A stretch of DNA of 64,000 nt from Podarcis melisellensis (lineage: Eukaryota): NCBI GenBank assembly GCA_964234715.1, contig OZ174277.1; one strand, written 5' to 3'. The position numbers and the translations under genes are program-made. Positions 24,115-41,804 of the stretch are shown here, in pieces (position 1 is the stretch's first letter; the number at the start of each line of letters is the position of its first letter). A model generated the notes under the pieces. That model was not told where the DNA came from, searched no databases, and worked only from the letters and a program-made list of their open reading frames with translations.

Positions 24115-24288
24115 CTTTACATAAGATTTTTCTGTGTCCATAAGCTCTTGGATGACCTTCCTAAGTCTGTCTGCGTCAGTAAGTTGCCGTGCCAGGGGCT
24201 TCAGAGGCGGAATGTTCTTTATTCCTTCCATACTGTTTACCTGAGATTCATGGAAATGTGGGCACAAAGCTGAAATCTGCTCGGCGCT
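24115..24288 (-). CDS. TIAM2: TIAM2 exon (linker and start of DH domain)
   Basis: ccgacag|AGC...AAG|gtaata; 174 nt; SAEQISALCPHFHESQVNSMEGIKNIPPLKPLARQLTDADRLRKVIQELMDTEKSYVK. Confidence 0.96.
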
Positions 24289-27200
24289 CTGTCGGTTGAA
24301 AAACACAGAGACAGACTAGTTATCATACTTTGCTTCCCACTGCACATTTGACATTGACCTATGTACCATTGCATGTATAGCAGGCAAATACATGGTTAAG
24401 GAGTTCAGTTTCTAACAGTGCAATCCAAAAGTCTCTAACCAGTGCAATCCCATCCATGTCTACCCAAAAGAAAATCTTATTGAGTTCAACTGGACTTGGT
24501 CCCAGGAACATGGGTATAGGATTGCAGCCTATATGTTCAATTCTATGGCCCTGCAGATGTTGTTGGACTACAACTTCCATCATCCGTGCCCACTGGCTAT
24601 GCTGGTAGGGGCAGACTCCCCCCTCCCACTCCATTTGGTGAATGAATTATTTAAGATGCAAAGACATAATATAGGTTCTTGCTTGATCTAAAATATCCAT
24701 GGAAGATAGTGTATAATGCACTAATGTGAGAATACCTAAATAGTAAGCTAAAACATGTTCATTTTTCAGCTTTCCAACCAACTTCTTGGTTTCTGATTTT
24801 CCTGTTACAATCTATTTATTCAAACATCAGAAAAATACACAACACAATGCCACCTTTTTAGATCGGCCTTTGAATGACAATGATAAGAAAACCACATGAC
24901 GCTAGAGCTCCAAGAGGAAAGGATAAACAACAACAACCAGTTATGTTAAATAGGACCACACATTTCATGTGATATGCTGTTTGACCTTAATCTGGAAACA
25001 AGATGGGGTGGTGAGAATGGACACTGATGTCCACTCCAACTTAGCAGTTCTATGATTTTCAGTTACTGTATGGCATTTCTAGCTGAATTGCTGTCGTATG
25101 ATAACTTCCTTTTTCAACCACACATTTTTTTACAGTCTTTCTTGTGTTTATCAGCCATCCCTGGACCCGCTGCCCTGCACTTTCTTATTTAATGCCACTC
25201 TCCCTTTTTCTCCTCTTATTTCCTACCCTGCAGATTTGAGGTCTGTGTGCAAGGGCTTCCTTTATCTCTTGCACACAGAACAATGATTGTAGGTGCTTCA
25301 AAAAGATGACATCCATTGTCAACGATGCTGCAGATCAGACATGCTAGTCATGCTGCCTATTGTTCCCATTTCTTGAAGTATATTATTTTACAATCTGAGT
25401 AGTATTGGTCACGGGAAAAGTGACAAGAAACATTGTTGTGTATTTTTGAAAACTTGCAGAATGTGGGAAGGGGTTAGAAATGGTCAGTATTCCAGACTCT
25501 GGCATTTTTATAACAAATGACTGCACCCACAAACAATGTCAACATCAATCCTCAATTTGTTATTTAAAGATGTTAAATTGTTGTTATAAAGAACAAAATG
25601 TTATCACGCTCACAGATACACCAGAACAGATAGATGTTGATAATGACAGGAAGTGCTGTTTTCTAGATTAGTGCTATATTTGTGCCAGATTCATCCGTCC
25701 AAAGCGTTTTCCAGGAATGTGAGTGACTTCAAGCTGTGTCAAGATTCAACACACTTGTCACGTTTCATTTTGTGTTCTTCCTCACTGTCCCAGTATTTCA
25801 TGTAGTTTAATCTTCCAGAATTGTAGACTTTAAAGTTTTCTCTAAAACGAATTTGTGCAGTTGCACCTACGCCTCCCTCTCAATAAATTAGATGCAATGC
25901 ACCAAAAGGTATGCACCAAAAGTTATTTAGAAAATGATGCGTTTAGTTTTTGCTTACAAATTATTCAACAGATAAAATGGACACGGTGAGCAAGCTTCAG
26001 ACCATGGGTTCTCATCACTCCTACCATTATTTTAGATTATGGATAATCATTCATCCTCTAATAATGGCATCAGAAACAAACAAAAATCTGGCACAGGAGT
26101 AGACAGCCAAGCTACTAAATACAGCTATAGCTCAGACCATTCAGGCTACCATGTTATTATAACAGACCCCTCAAGTGTCCCGATTTAATCCAGACATCCC
26201 AAATTTACAGAAGATGCCCTGGAGAAGGATGAGCAGGCAGGTGCGGAAGGGGGCGGTCTCTGTCAGTGGCAGGGAGAGGGTGTGGGATGGGGTGGAGGGT
26301 GCCCTGAATTGCCCTCCCAAAATGTTGGAGGGTATGTTATAACCTTCAAACACTTAAATATTGTCAGTAATAGCTATGTAGGTTGTCAGGGGTGGGAGAG
26401 AGAATAGAACACAAGAAAGATAAATGATCTCTAGTTTAAGAAAATGCAACACAGAAATCTAATCAAAATATCTTGAGAGTTGGATTCCTTTGTGATGAAA
26501 AAATTCAATATAAAAATAGTTTCATTAAGCAGCCCAGTGTCTTGCTATTCTCCACCCACAGCAAGAAAAAAAATATGCCTGATCAATACTTCAAGCACAG
26601 TATCTTTTGTTCATGAATAAACTTTTGCAGGATTAGATAACCACAACCTGAGTAAGCCAAGACACTGTTACAAGGCAAACTGTTACAAGGTAATCCACCA
26701 GCTGTTTATGGTGATGTATTCAAGGAGGCTCAGGCTCAATGGAAGCCTCTGAATCAGTATTAGTTTGAAGCCTAATTCGAAAGCTTATTGGCTATTAATG
26801 TTGTGTTTTAATGAATTAGAAAGAATGTAAGTGGTTTCCTCTATGCAATTTCAACAGTATACAATGGAAAAGGTACTTCAGGATTCAATCTTATCACAGA
26901 TGTTTAAAACATGGCTTAGACATAAGGTGTCCCTGCACTCAGAATTCTCTGTCATTTTCTGTTGTTCCCACTCAGAAAGTGTTAATTAAGAAGTAAGTTG
27001 CAGACTACTGCAACAACAGTCAAGGTCTGCAGTATTTAACTCATTGTCCTTTGTACTTAAGTACATTCACTTTAGTTTTCAGATGTGTACTTTTTGGGGG
27101 TTGGGGGGGGGAGGAGTGTCCAAAACTCCACAATCCAGAGAAGGATATCCATGTATGGAAGGTTCACGTCTGTGCTCCTATCAGGAATGAAAGTGCAAAT

Positions 27201-27940
27201 TGTATGCACACCTGCGTAATGGATCCCATCTACCCCAGTGCTTTACTTTCAATCTATATCTATACATGAATATGAATGAGAAATCAAGAATGTTATGCAA
27301 TTTACATAGATGGTTTCTGCATGTAGGCTTGCATTTCCCATTTCTGCATACAAGTCTCTTTCACCTGTATCAGTGCTGTAAATCACTGAGGTTGGAAACT
27401 TAAGGGACAGGGCAGCGCTGCAGCCAACCCCCCCCCCCCAAAGAATCATACTGACATAAATGTTATCTGAAAAAGAAACTCCTCTACTACCAAAGTAGGA
27501 GGATTTCGCTAGTTGCAGATTGTATCACTAGCACAGTTATACTAGAGATGCACTTCCTTGTTCTTTTAAATGCCTTCTCAGATAGTTTATAGCTGCAAGA
27601 TGTAGAAGGGAGACAATTTTGCAAAGAATTCTGAAACAGTTGTTGAAGTTTGATTCAACATGGTATTGTGAGTGGTATTGTTTTGGACACCAATCTCAAA
27701 CACAATCCATTATTTTATTTTTTTAACACACACACACACACACACGCAGCAAGTTTAGTTTACCCTTACTCAAGATCAATTCTGTTAATTACTGCCATGC
27801 TCACTTACGGATATTATTATATTAACAACTGTGCATGCATTAAATGGAAGGACAGTCCATAGGTTTTATATACAATTCCTGCTTCTTTCAAATTTTGCAT
27901 TTCAAGTTTGCTCAAGCAGTTTAAAGAATGAAACACTTAC

Positions 27941-28081
27941 CCTTGAAACTATCCTCTGCAGGGATCCGTAAGCTGCTGATGTTTGCTGCTTTGCTTTCCT
28001 TCCTAAAGCTAAGCCCTTAACTCTGGTTTTACTGTGTTTGAAGGCAGGCATTGTATAACTTGCCTCAATGAATTTTTCTCC
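27941..28081 (-). CDS. TIAM2: Candidate alternative TIAM2 coding exon B (141 nt, phase 0-0)
   Basis: Pyrimidine-rich acceptor ending ...ctttttag|GGA and donor AGG|gtaagt; 47 codons with no stop, in phase with the downstream DH exon: GEKFIEASYTMPAFKHSKTRVKGLALGRKAKQQTSAAYGSLQRIVSR. No homology recognised; inferred from splice signals and frame only. Confidence 0.55.
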
Positions 28082-28198
28082 CTAAAAAAGCAAATACTTC
28101 AAAAAGTGAAGGTGGCGAGGCCCTTTATTAAATCACTCTGGCACATTATTTTGAGGCGCACTTTGGCAATAGGGGAAAAAACATCACCCAGCAGTTAC

Positions 28199-28252
28199 CT
28201 TGTGCACTGACGTACGATAACCTGATATGCGGCTGTTCTGCATTTAGTTGAG
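28199..28252 (-). CDS. TIAM2: Candidate alternative TIAM2 start exon A (54 nt; ATG at 28243)
   Basis: tttttccctgtattttgtttag|CTC AAC TAA ATG...CAC AAG|gtaact; encodes MQNSRISGYRTSVHK ending in phase 0; a 117-nt intron joins it to exon B. Confidence 0.45.
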
Positions 28253-31200
28253 CTAAACAAAATACAGGGAAAAACACACTACTCAGTCTATAAAATATCT
28301 CGTACAAAACTATTGCAATTCCTGCAAGGGGTGGAAGAATACCTTCAAGATTCAACTGAACACCACAGAGTTTCTCTGCTTAAAGAAACCCAAAAATTTG
28401 TGGATCAAATCCCATTCAGAGGTTTCTGGCTAACAAACCCTATGGAATTTAACATGTAACCCAAAACATCGGGTACTATTAGAAATCTGCTGGATAGAGA
28501 GAGAATAGAGAGGCTGGATGGCTCTGAAGGTCAGAGTGAGTTTTCAGTGACACTGCTGCTCTGTCAAGTATTTCAGACACTGAATGCCGTGGCTTCAAAA
28601 ACAGCAACACAGCACTGGAAAGTTAGAATGCCAAAAATTGTACACAGTTCAGTGGGGTTTTTGTTTATATAATTTTTCTTGTCCTTTATTTGAACTCCCC
28701 AGTTGTAATTGCATCAATACAAAAATCTACGGTAAGCTGTGCTGATTAATAAATTCATGCTTGAAAAGACATTTAATTTCCTATACTTCACTGTAGCTTA
28801 ATTAATGGCCACTGCTTTAAATGTACATTTGTAATATTTTAATACTATTATTTTTAATGTTTACTTTGCAACCTCATTTGGAGACCTAATGCTAAAAAAA
28901 AAAGGATTTCAATTAAACAAACACACATGGGATTGTTTCCAGAGCATTTTGAGAAAATTTGAAAACATGCTTCTGGAGACATTGTTTATTTATTCTTTCA
29001 TCCATCATTCATTCTTTCCATTTCTACCCTGCCCTTCATCAATTTGCAATCCAAGGGCAGGTTATGCTATGTGATGTGATGCATGGTGATAGCTGAAGCC
29101 TGCATTTCTTGGAGCTAGTTAAGAAGAAACCTACAGAAAATATTTCTGCATACAGTACTGCTGTAGAAAAAGTTCTGCTTTAGAATAAATGTTCAAGAAA
29201 TCCTAGTTTTCTCCCCATTAAGTAATATACTCTATTAATGAATCACTCCCATAAAAAGTTCTGAAATACGGTAATTTATCAATAAAGACAATAAAGCAAT
29301 TTAACAATAAATATGTAAGTAAATAAAATTTCTAGCCCAGTACAGATAGAAACAGGTATATAGATCTCCAATAAAAAGTCTTGTTTAAAAAAGAAGGTCT
29401 TCAATAGGTGCTGTGAAGACAATAAAGACTGTGCCTAATGGGAGGAAGTCCAAAGTTACTGGCTGATGTACAATAAGGGTGGAGAACCTTTGTGCTGGTT
29501 GACATCAACCAAGATCACATTTCAGAAAAGTGTGTGGTACTAGAACAAGTTGGTACAACAAGAACAGGCCATACTCACATTACTTCTACTCACAAAGTAT
29601 GGAAATCTGTCCTATACACACCCTTTCCCTCTCTTATTCAAAGCCAAGAAGAGTGGCAAGAGCTAGGATGTCTGGTTAGCTGGGGTTCTCAACCACAAAA
29701 CACGAGGGCTAGCACATCTCTATATGGCAATCTAGCTTCCACACTCCATGTGTGGCCTTCTGAGCAAGTACACCTGCATGCCTGTATGTATGCTTCCCAG
29801 TGTCTCTTGGCTCTGCAGCCAAAGATGAGATGGGAAGAGCAGCTGGAAAGGACACGGATCCCAATAATGGGAAACATGTGTTCCTTCAGATATTGTGGGA
29901 CCCAGTTCCCACAATCCCCAGCTACCATGGCTTGTTTGTCAGAGATGATGGGAGATGTGGTCCAACTGAACTACATGGAAAGTGCTTACGCTCAGATAAA
30001 ACGGCATCATGATCTGCATTTTCACCAATGTCCAATTGGTGAATGTCCAAAAAGGCCCTTATTCTGGTTCTACAGCAAGAATATTAAGACGATTATGGCT
30101 CACAGTTGGGTCTTCAATACTCATGCAGAGCTTCAGACATGCAGCGGTTATTTTCATTTATGAGCCAAGTAATATCTGCATGCACAATAGGTTAGGTGCA
30201 TGTGTGCAATGAAACACTGTCATTCACAAAGAAGCCATTTGATCATGGTGAACTTCTTAGTATGCTTAGCTTGAATGTATTTTTTGCATGTATAAAGTGG
30301 CTTTCATAAGCAGGCAGGCAGGCAGGCAATCAGCAGTACTGAGTACCGACTATCGTCTAAGGATGTCAATCTTTTAGAAATATTTACACAATTCTGTTGT
30401 TAACTTCTGACATGCTGCAGTATAAATATACTAATGGTTAGGATGGGTATGCTAAGACTGTATGAATATGCATCAATTATTTTATTTACTTACTTACTAG
30501 CAAAATGCCAGGTATGACAGGCAGGGTAGGATGGGTGGGGAGAGGACACGGTTAGCAAAGAGTCTGGGGCTTGTAGTATTCTTTGAACACACATACGTAT
30601 ATATTCATCCACCTTAGTGAAGGCCAACACTTCACTTGACCCAATGGGAACGGAATGGCAGACACTCACTGATAGAGAAAAAGTAAAGGTGGACATTGGA
30701 GGCATCCACACTCCTGAAACAGGGTAGTGACTGATTTAGCTCACTGCCACTAGACTCTGCTTTCATTTGAAGACTTTTTTACAACTGTGTAAATCCAACA
30801 TAGAAAGAACCTGGGAAGTAACACAAGTGCCAAAAGGTCTCCCCACCCCCAGTCCTACAGACTGCAGCTCTTTTATTTGTCTCATAAAACTGAATAGAAA
30901 GCCTCGAAAACTGAGCCAATTCCAATCTCTGTAGTCTTGCCCTGTCTCCTATCTGAATGTCTTAGTCATGTGTGTTTCACAATTATTCTCTTTCTTCCTC
31001 ATTGAAATTCTGTGAGATAGGTCACTATTATTCTTTTTTTGCAGAATGGGAATTAAGGCTGAAAGATGGCAATTTGCCCGAAACTACCTAATGTAGCTGT
31101 GGCTGATCTCCAGAAAGAGAATATACTTGATGCTGAATTGAAACGATATATAATAATGCCATTTCTGAAAAATAAATGCAATTCATCATTATTTTTAAAG

Positions 31201-35794: not shown

Positions 35795-37254
35795 ACACAC
35801 TTGTGGAGTTTAGATTAATTACAATTTTGATTTCTTTACTTACATATGTTAAGGAAAGAGAGTCAGATAATAATTTTCTCCTTCCAGACTCAGGGATGAT
35901 ATCTAAAGCTGTTGTCTGCCAGGAACTGAGCACTTCTTCCAATCCCTCTTTCACAAAATAATCCTCAGACTGATTGTTCTTCCAGCCTGCACTGAAAACC
36001 TCCTAGCGTCACGACCATCTTCTTCACATCATGTTTTTACATAGTCCCACACTTAACAATATTACATAACGCCAAGATGCTTCTTCTGCTGTACTTTCAC
36101 ATAAGTGCACTCAATGAAGTCATGCAGAAATATGAAGCTGGGGTGGAAATCAAGCATTTTCAATAGTAAATTGCTATGAAAGTCTTAAGGCTACTCACAA
36201 AGAGGATGTCTAAAACAAGGCTAGGAAAAGAAAAGAGACATCATTTTGCTCTTTCTGCCTCCGCTCACAATATCTTTTCAGCAAGACTACTTTCTAATGC
36301 ACCCCCCAACACACACACACACACCAACACATCTGTTGGAGACAGACAGGGTCATACAAATTGCTCTGACAGTAATAGGCACCCTCCAACCAAAAAACCG
36401 GCATTCAATTATAAGCCATTTGCAGAAATTGTAGGGCTGTCAAAGACACTGCTACAGTTGGTGGTTCAAGTCTGGTAGTGTTAAAGCTCAAACCATTTTT
36501 TTCCTACTGCATCTTAAATCTAGAACATCCTTACTTAACCGCTCAAAACATCAGCAACATTATCTAGGACTAAATGCTCTAACAATAGTGTTAGTGCATA
36601 TGAACAATAGTCCCAAACGCGTCAACATGCATGCGTGCACACCCACACACAAACACAATTATAAAGAAACACTTCCCTGTACCTTTCCAATTAATTGTTA
36701 AAGTAACATATGCAAAGGAATGTAAAGGACAACTTACGGTTTGCACTGAAAAGCACTATAAATAAATTGTGTCTATGTGTAGCCATTCCACTAAATTTGC
36801 TGTTATTGCCAGGCTTCCAGAACAGAGGACAAAGGAAGCAGAAATTCTTTTGATAAGCAGTTGTTTTCCTTTAGTCATCAAATTACGTATTGATTGGAGT
36901 TTCTTTTTGTTTGTTTGTTTTTAAAAAGAAGAACTAACAAATGCAAGGGAACAGAGACAATGGAGCTATCTCCACTTTATTTATTTTGAGCAAGGAGATA
37001 GGGCCAAGGGCAAAGAATGGATTGTGACTTCCCTTTGGATCGAACAACACTGTAGAACTAGATGGCTAAAATTGGGGTCTGAAACTACAGAGTGGGGATT
37101 CTCACAGAAACGTTTGTGGAAATTAGTCTGAAACCAGAGCATGATACAACTTCATGAAAGATGCAAGACTAATGTGCTGGACACATTAGTGTGTGTCTGG
37201 ACTTATCACAGCAAATAGGCAGGGAGTGTCCTACTACGTAAGTCCAGAAGCTTG

Positions 37255-39552: not shown

Positions 39553-41101
39553 GTATATGTTGATTGCTGGCTTGAAGGGGTTTTTTCTATTGTTTGGTAG
39601 CTTTAAAAAAATGTTTTGTGTTATGACTTTCTGGTAAGTTGTTAGTATCGTTTCTTGCTTTAAGTCACTTTGGGTACCTCATGGCACAGAATCAGCAAAA
39701 ATAAAATACATGCATACATACCTACAACTGCCTGAAAACTGAGCTTCCCTCAAGCTGAAGCTCAAGTAGTTCCATTTCTTATGAGTGTGGAAAGTAGCAC
39801 TCGGAAGAGGAAATCATTTTTGTGACGGACAAGAAGAGAGATAGGTAGCGATGCAGTTTTGAAGGTGAATTTTTTTGGATGCAGTTATTGCCAGCAGCCC
39901 TGTTTGAAATCAGGGGTGGCATGGCGAGAATGGGGCTGGATGAAAGAGGATGAAGGACAAAGGGTAGAGCCAACCATGGCTGACATGCAGGGCTGGGCAC
40001 AATCAAGCAGCTGCTTATTGCTTCTGCCCTCAAGGGGGGCCCAGGACAGACCTTACTGCTGGCTACTGACCTGCCATTTAGCAAACAGCCTATGGGAGGC
40101 ATCAACCCCTGCTTCTCTGAGACGGCATTGGGTGATGTGGGGTTGCCACAGCTCTTGGTGCTCACTGCTGACCCTATCTGTAGGCACTGGAAAACCACTA
40201 GCTGTCATCAGGGACCAAGCAGGAGTTTGCGGGTAAGGTACAGATATGGCTGTAGAAGTCCAGGCAGTTTCAAAATGCCATGGATCAGCTGTCAGGTGAG
40301 GCCAGTGGTTAAAGAAGTTGAGGAGACAAAGAAAGAAGGCAAGGAGCACAGATGGGTTGGGGAACAAGTTATACACGTGTGTGTGTGTGTGTACACGCAG
40401 AAATGCAACTGCTTCCTTCAGAAAATACACAAGATGTCAGGCAGACGTGCGTGTGCGTGTTCAGCCTTGAGCTTTCAGAAGTCCTTGAAGGAGATACAGG
40501 TACTACCTGACGCTCTTCACTTCTCCTCCATGAGCTTCCATTAGCAGCTAGCATGGCCCAAATGTGGATGAGGGGCTGACTGTAATTTCAATGACACTTA
40601 ATTCTAAATTCACTCACTGGGTAGGACAGGGCTTGGAAACCTGTAGCCCTCCAGATGTTGCTGATGCCCAACTTGAGACTACTTGCCTCGTTGTGTGGAT
40701 AGGGCATCACCTGGCTCGCATTGAGAAACTACTTTTAAATGTGCTTTAGAAGAGAAACGAGTTGCCCATATAAACCAGTGTATGTACATACTGGTCAGAA
40801 TATACCTTTTGGCCCCTCAAATGCTCCACACTTCCAAAATAGTTTCTTTCCTAGCCCTACCTACACACTTCTCACAAACCTCCTGTGCACTGCAGTGCTG
40901 ATCTAGCTGACCAGTCCCAAACCAAAACAAACCTGGGGTAAACCCATGCCAATTCACTTGTCTGGGCACATGACTGAGGTATACAAAAATGAACAGCCAT
41001 TCAAGTCATGGTCTAAATAACTTTGATCCTCTTAATCCTAAAAATCAGAAGCCAAAGTTCAAGAGCAGTTGAAGGAGTAAAAATACTGACAACATCAAGA
41101 G

Positions 41102-41700: not shown

Positions 41701-41804
41701 CTGGAAAGATAACTCAAGTTTCTCCTTCTGGGGAACCTGGTCCAGAATGCCATTCGTACTGCTTCTTTTCAGACTTGCAGTAACATCAGGCACATTGCTG
41801 AAAT
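41701..41804 (-). CDS. TIAM2: TIAM2 exon (PDZ-DH linker)
   Basis: catgcag|AT...CAG|gtaaga; 104 nt; (D)FSNVPDVTASLKRSSTNGILDQVPQKEKLELSFQ. Confidence 0.94.

Follow-up and report, generated by a model that had tools for sequence, protein, structure and literature searches.

The window analysed here, a stretch of 64,000 nucleotides from Podarcis melisellensis, carries on its minus strand part of a gene that, judging by its sequence, is a member of the TIAM family of Rac-GEFs, since its first DH-domain exon is approximately 70% identical to the beginning of chain 1foe_A from the TIAM1 DH-PH crystal structure. The assignment to TIAM2 is that of the original prediction, and the value of 70% identity to mouse TIAM1 at the start of the DH domain suggests a paralogue and not TIAM1 itself. 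The DH exon is 72% identical between lizard and bird, and the bird copy also has a phase-0 acceptor. A Pfam search assigned no family to this exon or to exon B described below, both being too short, or to ten larger minus-strand open segments. Upstream of the DH exon lies an intron of 17.4 kb (41700-24289), whose borders at 41701 and 24288 were confirmed by a spliced contig from sister-lizard RNA. The features in and around this intron are compiled in Table 1.

Table 1. Features of the TIAM-family locus, given from 5' to 3' on the minus strand. Positions count from the first nucleotide of the window, and identities are fractions.
Feature	Position	Strand	Identity among birds	Identity, lizard versus birds	Remarks
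Canonical upstream exon of the long isoform, 3' end	41701-41733	minus			exact match to the letters of the X1 contig
Non-coding block shared by lizard and birds	28505-28766	minus			~260 nt; 450-715 nt upstream of the leader ATG
Exon A, with ATG 28243	28199-28252	minus			15 codons from the ATG; donor AAG/GTAACT
117-nt intron of the original prediction	28082-28198	minus			gap between exon A and exon B
Lizard TAG acceptor to conserved ATG	28052-28081	minus		0.46	30 nt
37 nt upstream of the coding block			0.87	0.46	
Conserved leader coding block, proposed first coding exon segment	27941-28051	minus	0.92-0.97	0.63-0.78	111 nt; ATG and 37 codons, starts MPAF
Splice donor	27935-27940	minus			GTAAGT (GTGAGT in birds); phase 0, directly after codon 37
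Downstream of the coding block			0.5-0.8 (0.54-0.61 over the first ~150 nt)		
Both flanks of the coding block				0.2-0.5	
First DH-domain exon	24115-24288	minus			begins SAEQ; phase-0 acceptor; would accept the leader

Two minus-strand units, each with an acceptor and a donor, had been predicted inside the 17.4-kb intron, and both were found in the letters, including the gap of 117 nt between them. Exon A is preceded by a pyrimidine tract and a TAG ending at 28253 (minus strand), and a reading that starts at its acceptor meets an in-frame TAA before the ATG. Exon B (28081-27941, minus strand) consists of 141 nt, equal to 47 codons free of stops, and is bordered by a T-rich tract with a TAG acceptor and by the donor AGG/GTAAGT, which has the best donor score in the whole intron. 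The predicted join to the DH exon in phase 0 (45 + 141 nt = 62 codons) was reproduced, as was the second ATG at 28051, which has A at -3 and opens 37 codons with nine K/R and no D/E; one H is also present.

The frequency of such units was estimated with a rough donor and acceptor matrix, by counting open phase-0 units of at least 141 nt whose sites are as good as those of exon B. The 17.4-kb intron yielded one on the sense strand, which is exon B itself, and two on the antisense strand, compared to 0.02 in mononucleotide shuffles. Real intron DNA gives about one unit per strand, and the splice-like motif pattern by itself does not exceed chance. The case depends on conservation across species, which is confined to 28051-27941 and its donor. 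Apart from exon B, only 40071-40415 (minus strand, 115 codons from acceptor to donor) combines on the sense strand an acceptor and an open frame with a phase-0 donor; its translation is of low complexity and looks non-coding, and we rejected it as a coding segment.

A block of 37 codons shared by lizard and birds

A phmmer search with the exon B peptide against 1.84 billion representative sequences returned three matches (E 8.7e-7 to 1.6e-4, 62-67% identity). All three are ORFs on Logan contigs that read through the donor into the intron, and the loci are long genomic contigs. One of the underlying runs, ERR7220458 (contig L010), is a 10X genomic dataset from the northern goshawk (PMC9020535), and the remaining contigs are taken for birds because they share the peptide and have alignable flanks. 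None of the contigs resembles human sequence, and the DH exon of the birds differs from the human one. A word search with the 47 aa of exon B gave no match, which is uninformative at its length limit of 26-82 aa.

In three of the bird contigs (L001, L003 and L004), the leader block is located on the same strand as the DH exon and 6.7 kb upstream of it. An unbiased blastn comparison of lizard positions 22000-42500 with the bird contigs recovered two DH exons, the leader and the segments 28766-28660, 28568-28521 and 36460-36329, all of them colinear. No further conserved block was detected downstream of the leader until the DH exon is reached, which makes the DH exon the natural partner of the conserved donor. 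Almost all Logan contigs of the goshawk type (L003-L010) break off approximately 670 nt before the bird leader ORF begins, and these shared ends suggest a repeat or a stretch that is hard to assemble.

The alignment from ATG to donor comprised the lizard and seven bird lineages. Across these eight sequences the 111 nt contain no gap, and the ATG, the length and the frame are kept. Only the leader frame is open in 8/8 sequences, and the other two frames have stops in nearly all of them. The donor occupies the identical codon boundary in the lizard and in 7/7 bird lineages read, the latter with the GTGAGT variant, and identity falls from 0.92 to 0.61 across this edge. The A at -3 of the ATG at 28051 is likewise kept in lizard and birds, and in both the 37 codons end in phase 0, matching the phase-0 DH exon.

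The substitutions within the block have the appearance of coding sequence. Changes at codon positions 1/2/3 amount to 6/1/7 among birds and 10/5/15 between lizard and birds, both being small numbers, and the codon changes among birds comprise eight that are synonymous (~25 sites) and six that are non-synonymous (~86 sites). The resulting dN/dS is 0.25-0.33 for lizard versus birds and 0-0.14 among birds, again calculated from small numbers. Between the sister lizards, none of the ten listed differences falls into the 91 scorable nucleotides of exon B (P ~0.006 if differences were evenly spread). Frame conservation and dN/dS had been proposed as a check of the whole leader, and the segment 28051-27941 came through it without indels and with a dN/dS of ~0.25 between lizard and birds. 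By our own estimate, the two lineages separated approximately 280 million years ago. On the basis of this signature, 28051-27941 is very probably a real protein-coding segment that provides the start codon and the first 37 codons of an alternative 5' exon.

Transcripts and upstream elements

The RNA data comprised three raw RNA-seq runs and the X1 contig set of the sister lizard (organism A, ~4% diverged in introns), which is not recorded as RNA but proved to be so. X1 had been selected for containing this stretch, and it alone expresses the gene. A 1590-nt contig of X1 (depth 59) covers the DH exon, and its upstream continuation matches 41704-41733 exactly; the canonical long-isoform junction from 41701 to 24288 exists in RNA. 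The leader region is represented in X1 by a single contig of 289 nt (27961-28248, depth 3), which is unspliced and runs through the 117 nt. Since two low-depth intronic contigs of X1 together cover approximately 11% of the intron, and X1 was chosen for holding the stretch, the leader-region contig is not counted as specific expression and fits pre-mRNA background. The second unspliced contig (29289-29608, depth 2.8, ~4% diverged) adjoins a mild rise in G+C content (0.46 in 29500-30100) and is probably pre-mRNA background.

No X1 contig joins 27941 to 24288, a result that must be read in the light of contig assembly dropping rare forms. The three raw RNA-seq runs contained no read on the leader, at a DH exon depth under 1 that marks the gene as barely expressed. 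Word searches with the bird leader ORFs (products of 44-394 aa) retrieved only unspliced genomic ORFs that continue past the donor, which is a weak negative given the length limits and cluster absorption. All reads of the three runs were drawn by 24554-24585, where 32 nt of a dispersed repeat lie shortly before the DH exon. These reads extend on both sides into unlike sequence, with loose ends such as GGTTCTCAACCTGTGGGTCCC; they derive from SINE-like copies transcribed elsewhere and not from this locus.

Further upstream, the non-coding block of Table 1 is 73-75% identical to four bird loci over ~108 nt (28766-28660) and 79-81% identical over 48 nt (28568-28521) by blastn. In the alignment of the lizard with four birds, the mean column identity of 28505-28766 is 82%. 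The block holds a TGATGCAAT motif, a AACAAAGG motif and, at 28663-28673, a TATA-like motif, which was not accepted as a core promoter: in every species five to nine upstream ATGs intervene between it and the leader start, and it reads TATGTAAA in two birds. The block as a whole is a candidate for regulating an internal transcript.

Another conserved stretch was found 8 kb upstream of the leader at 36329-36460 (together with 35956-36025, minus strand), which is colinear with the gene; over 134 nt, the lizard sequence is 80.6% identical to bird contig L001. Motifs of the TGACAG and TAATTG type abound in this stretch, neither an open frame nor splice sites are evident, and it looks like an enhancer-like conserved non-coding element.

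Alternative structures around the 5' exon

The headline of the original prediction was a leader of 62 aa that starts at 28243 and is spliced from exon A to exon B over the 117 nt, which would represent a lineage-specific extension of the leader by 25 aa in lizard mRNA. The splice-like sites and the open frame required for this structure exist, and none of the differences listed for the sister lizard affects the AG or the GT. Birds, however, have neither ATG nor donor at the positions aligned to exon A and no AG at the position of the lizard exon B acceptor, the nearest bird AG varying among birds. Directly upstream of the leader ATG, lizard and birds are moreover separated by a 2-nt indel, and the upstream frames of the birds shift between species. 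With these sites missing and the indel in place, conservation begins at the second ATG, which argues against a conserved 62-aa leader as well as against a conserved in-frame cassette exon.

The comparison of the two close lizards points in the same direction, given that position 28215 in exon A changes Arg to His; nine substitutions and a 1-nt insertion are located in the 117-nt stretch, and none is listed in 27991-28081. Position -3 of the ATG at 28243 is a T, and the antisense strand of the intron contains two units of equal quality. The junction from 28199 to 28081 that had been named as a test was not seen, the lone RNA contig across the 117 nt being colinear with the genome; as it stems from the sister species at low depth, this is a weak negative. 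We consider the two-exon structure unsupported and improbable, and exon A is lizard-specific at best. The segment 28052-28081 is probably 5' UTR, and the sequence upstream of the leader ATG, including exon A and the 117-nt intron, is most likely untranslated or outside any conserved structure.

It is also quite unlikely that the leader block is a non-coding element, i.e. an enhancer or an untranslated RNA part in which the ATG, the GT and the frame are incidental. The intron does contain other blocks shared by lizard and birds that have no coding look (28766-28505 and 36460-36329), and X1 and the three raw RNA-seq runs provided no transcript evidence, but conservation of the leader block stops at the ATG and at the GT, the eight sequences are free of indels, changes avoid second codon positions, there is an excess of synonymous changes and a single frame is open in all species. 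We attribute a very low probability to the possibility that exon B is an in-frame cassette of the long isoform, adding 47 residues where the PDZ-side linker meets the DH domain. Although the 141 nt of the lizard run stop-free from phase 0 to phase 0 and have an acceptor, this acceptor is not conserved and conservation starts at the ATG instead, the 2-nt indel and the shifting bird frames lie directly before the ATG, and in the X1 contig 41701 is followed immediately by 24288. That the open frame and the splice-like motifs are functionless intron noise is hardly credible in view of the coding signature and the match to syntenic bird sequence (E 8.7e-7), even though the antisense strand shows the motif pattern at least as often.

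A putative short isoform with a basic leader

Our preferred explanation, to which we assign a probability of roughly 0.72, is that the conserved block would serve as an alternative first coding exon of 37 codons that is spliced to the DH exon and gives a short TIAM isoform composed of leader and DH-PH. Alongside the conservation, reading frame, donor and synteny observed, we infer a transcript that would begin inside the intron before the DH domain, with the phase-0 donor at 27941 spliced to the DH exon at 24288. Its translation product would contain the leader, DH, PH and the C-terminal tail, and would do without the N-terminal PH/CC-Ex, RBD and PDZ. The original prediction of an intronic 5' exon for a DH-PH-only TIAM2 with a basic N-terminus is thus retained for the 37-aa leader from 28051, which is conserved in birds, and abandoned for the two-exon form of 62 aa.

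The leader had furthermore been proposed to act as a targeting signal. Its net charge is +9 in the lizard and +8 in birds, with no D/E in either, and this part of the proposal stands. The maximum hydrophobic moment of 0.49 in the lizard and 0.44 in the bird was reached by 20% and 38% of shuffles, respectively. The reading as an amphipathic helix or mitochondrial presequence was rejected, as the hydrophobic moment does not exceed that of shuffles, and no specific class of signal is supported. Our best guess, held with low confidence, is that the charge may attract the truncated GEF electrostatically to acidic membranes or localise it in some other way; the polybasic leader would then cap the truncated GEF and bind such membranes electrostatically. 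Nuclear or mitochondrial targeting may be considered as alternatives, with similarly little confidence.

Constructs of TIAM1 that lack the N-terminal half are reportedly active Rac-GEFs. The proposed lizard product would resemble them as a DH-PH protein devoid of the N-terminal regulatory and localising domains. In contrast to these engineered truncations of a paralogue, it would be a natural form capped by a conserved basic peptide. The human short form of TIAM2 seems to start at an internal Met of the shared sequence, without a unique peptide (1701 - 626 = 1075). Unlike it, the lizard and bird locus would encode a unique, conserved basic leader of 37 aa.

Human TIAM2S (NM_001010927, ~626 aa) possesses a unique first exon within an intron of the long form and its own TATA-less promoter (PMC4799941), which agrees with the human short DH-PH isoform from an intronic 5' end that the original prediction had referred to. 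The proposed lizard isoform would be similar in being a short DH-PH form with its first exon in the intron before the catalytic part. In the mouse, testis Tiam2s is contiguous with exon 16 and its translation starts inside that exon, and the brain transcripts NM_001286757 and NM_001286758 have separate first exons in intron 15 (PMC6394906). The lizard transcript would share with these mouse forms a start in the intron that precedes the DH-side exon, which is exon 16 in the mouse. The leader of lizard and birds would be a separate exon, unlike in the testis form, which has none.

The locus looks like a sauropsid counterpart of mammalian isoforms of the TIAM2S type. Short TIAM2 forms with an internal start are known, and what is new, as far as checked, is a unique coding leader common to squamates and birds. 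The leader may already be part of automated sauropsid TIAM2 gene models, for which our result offers an annotation point of practical use.

Short TIAM2 forms differ from the long form in mouse sperm competition (PMC6394906) and in human tumours (PMC4799941). How a short TIAM2 without the N-terminal domains is localised is a question for which the conserved leader offers a concrete and testable peptide. We put forward, as a tentative and rather doubtful extension, that in sauropsids, and perhaps in all amniotes, a DH-PH-only TIAM2 carries the dedicated 37-residue polybasic peptide as an autonomous localisation signal for an acidic membrane, the nucleus or the mitochondrion, maintained by purifying selection for ~280 million years. 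If this were true, the short isoform would be a separately targeted Rac-GEF and not a mere truncated by-product. A leader common to lizards and birds would mean that the short isoform is old and selected.
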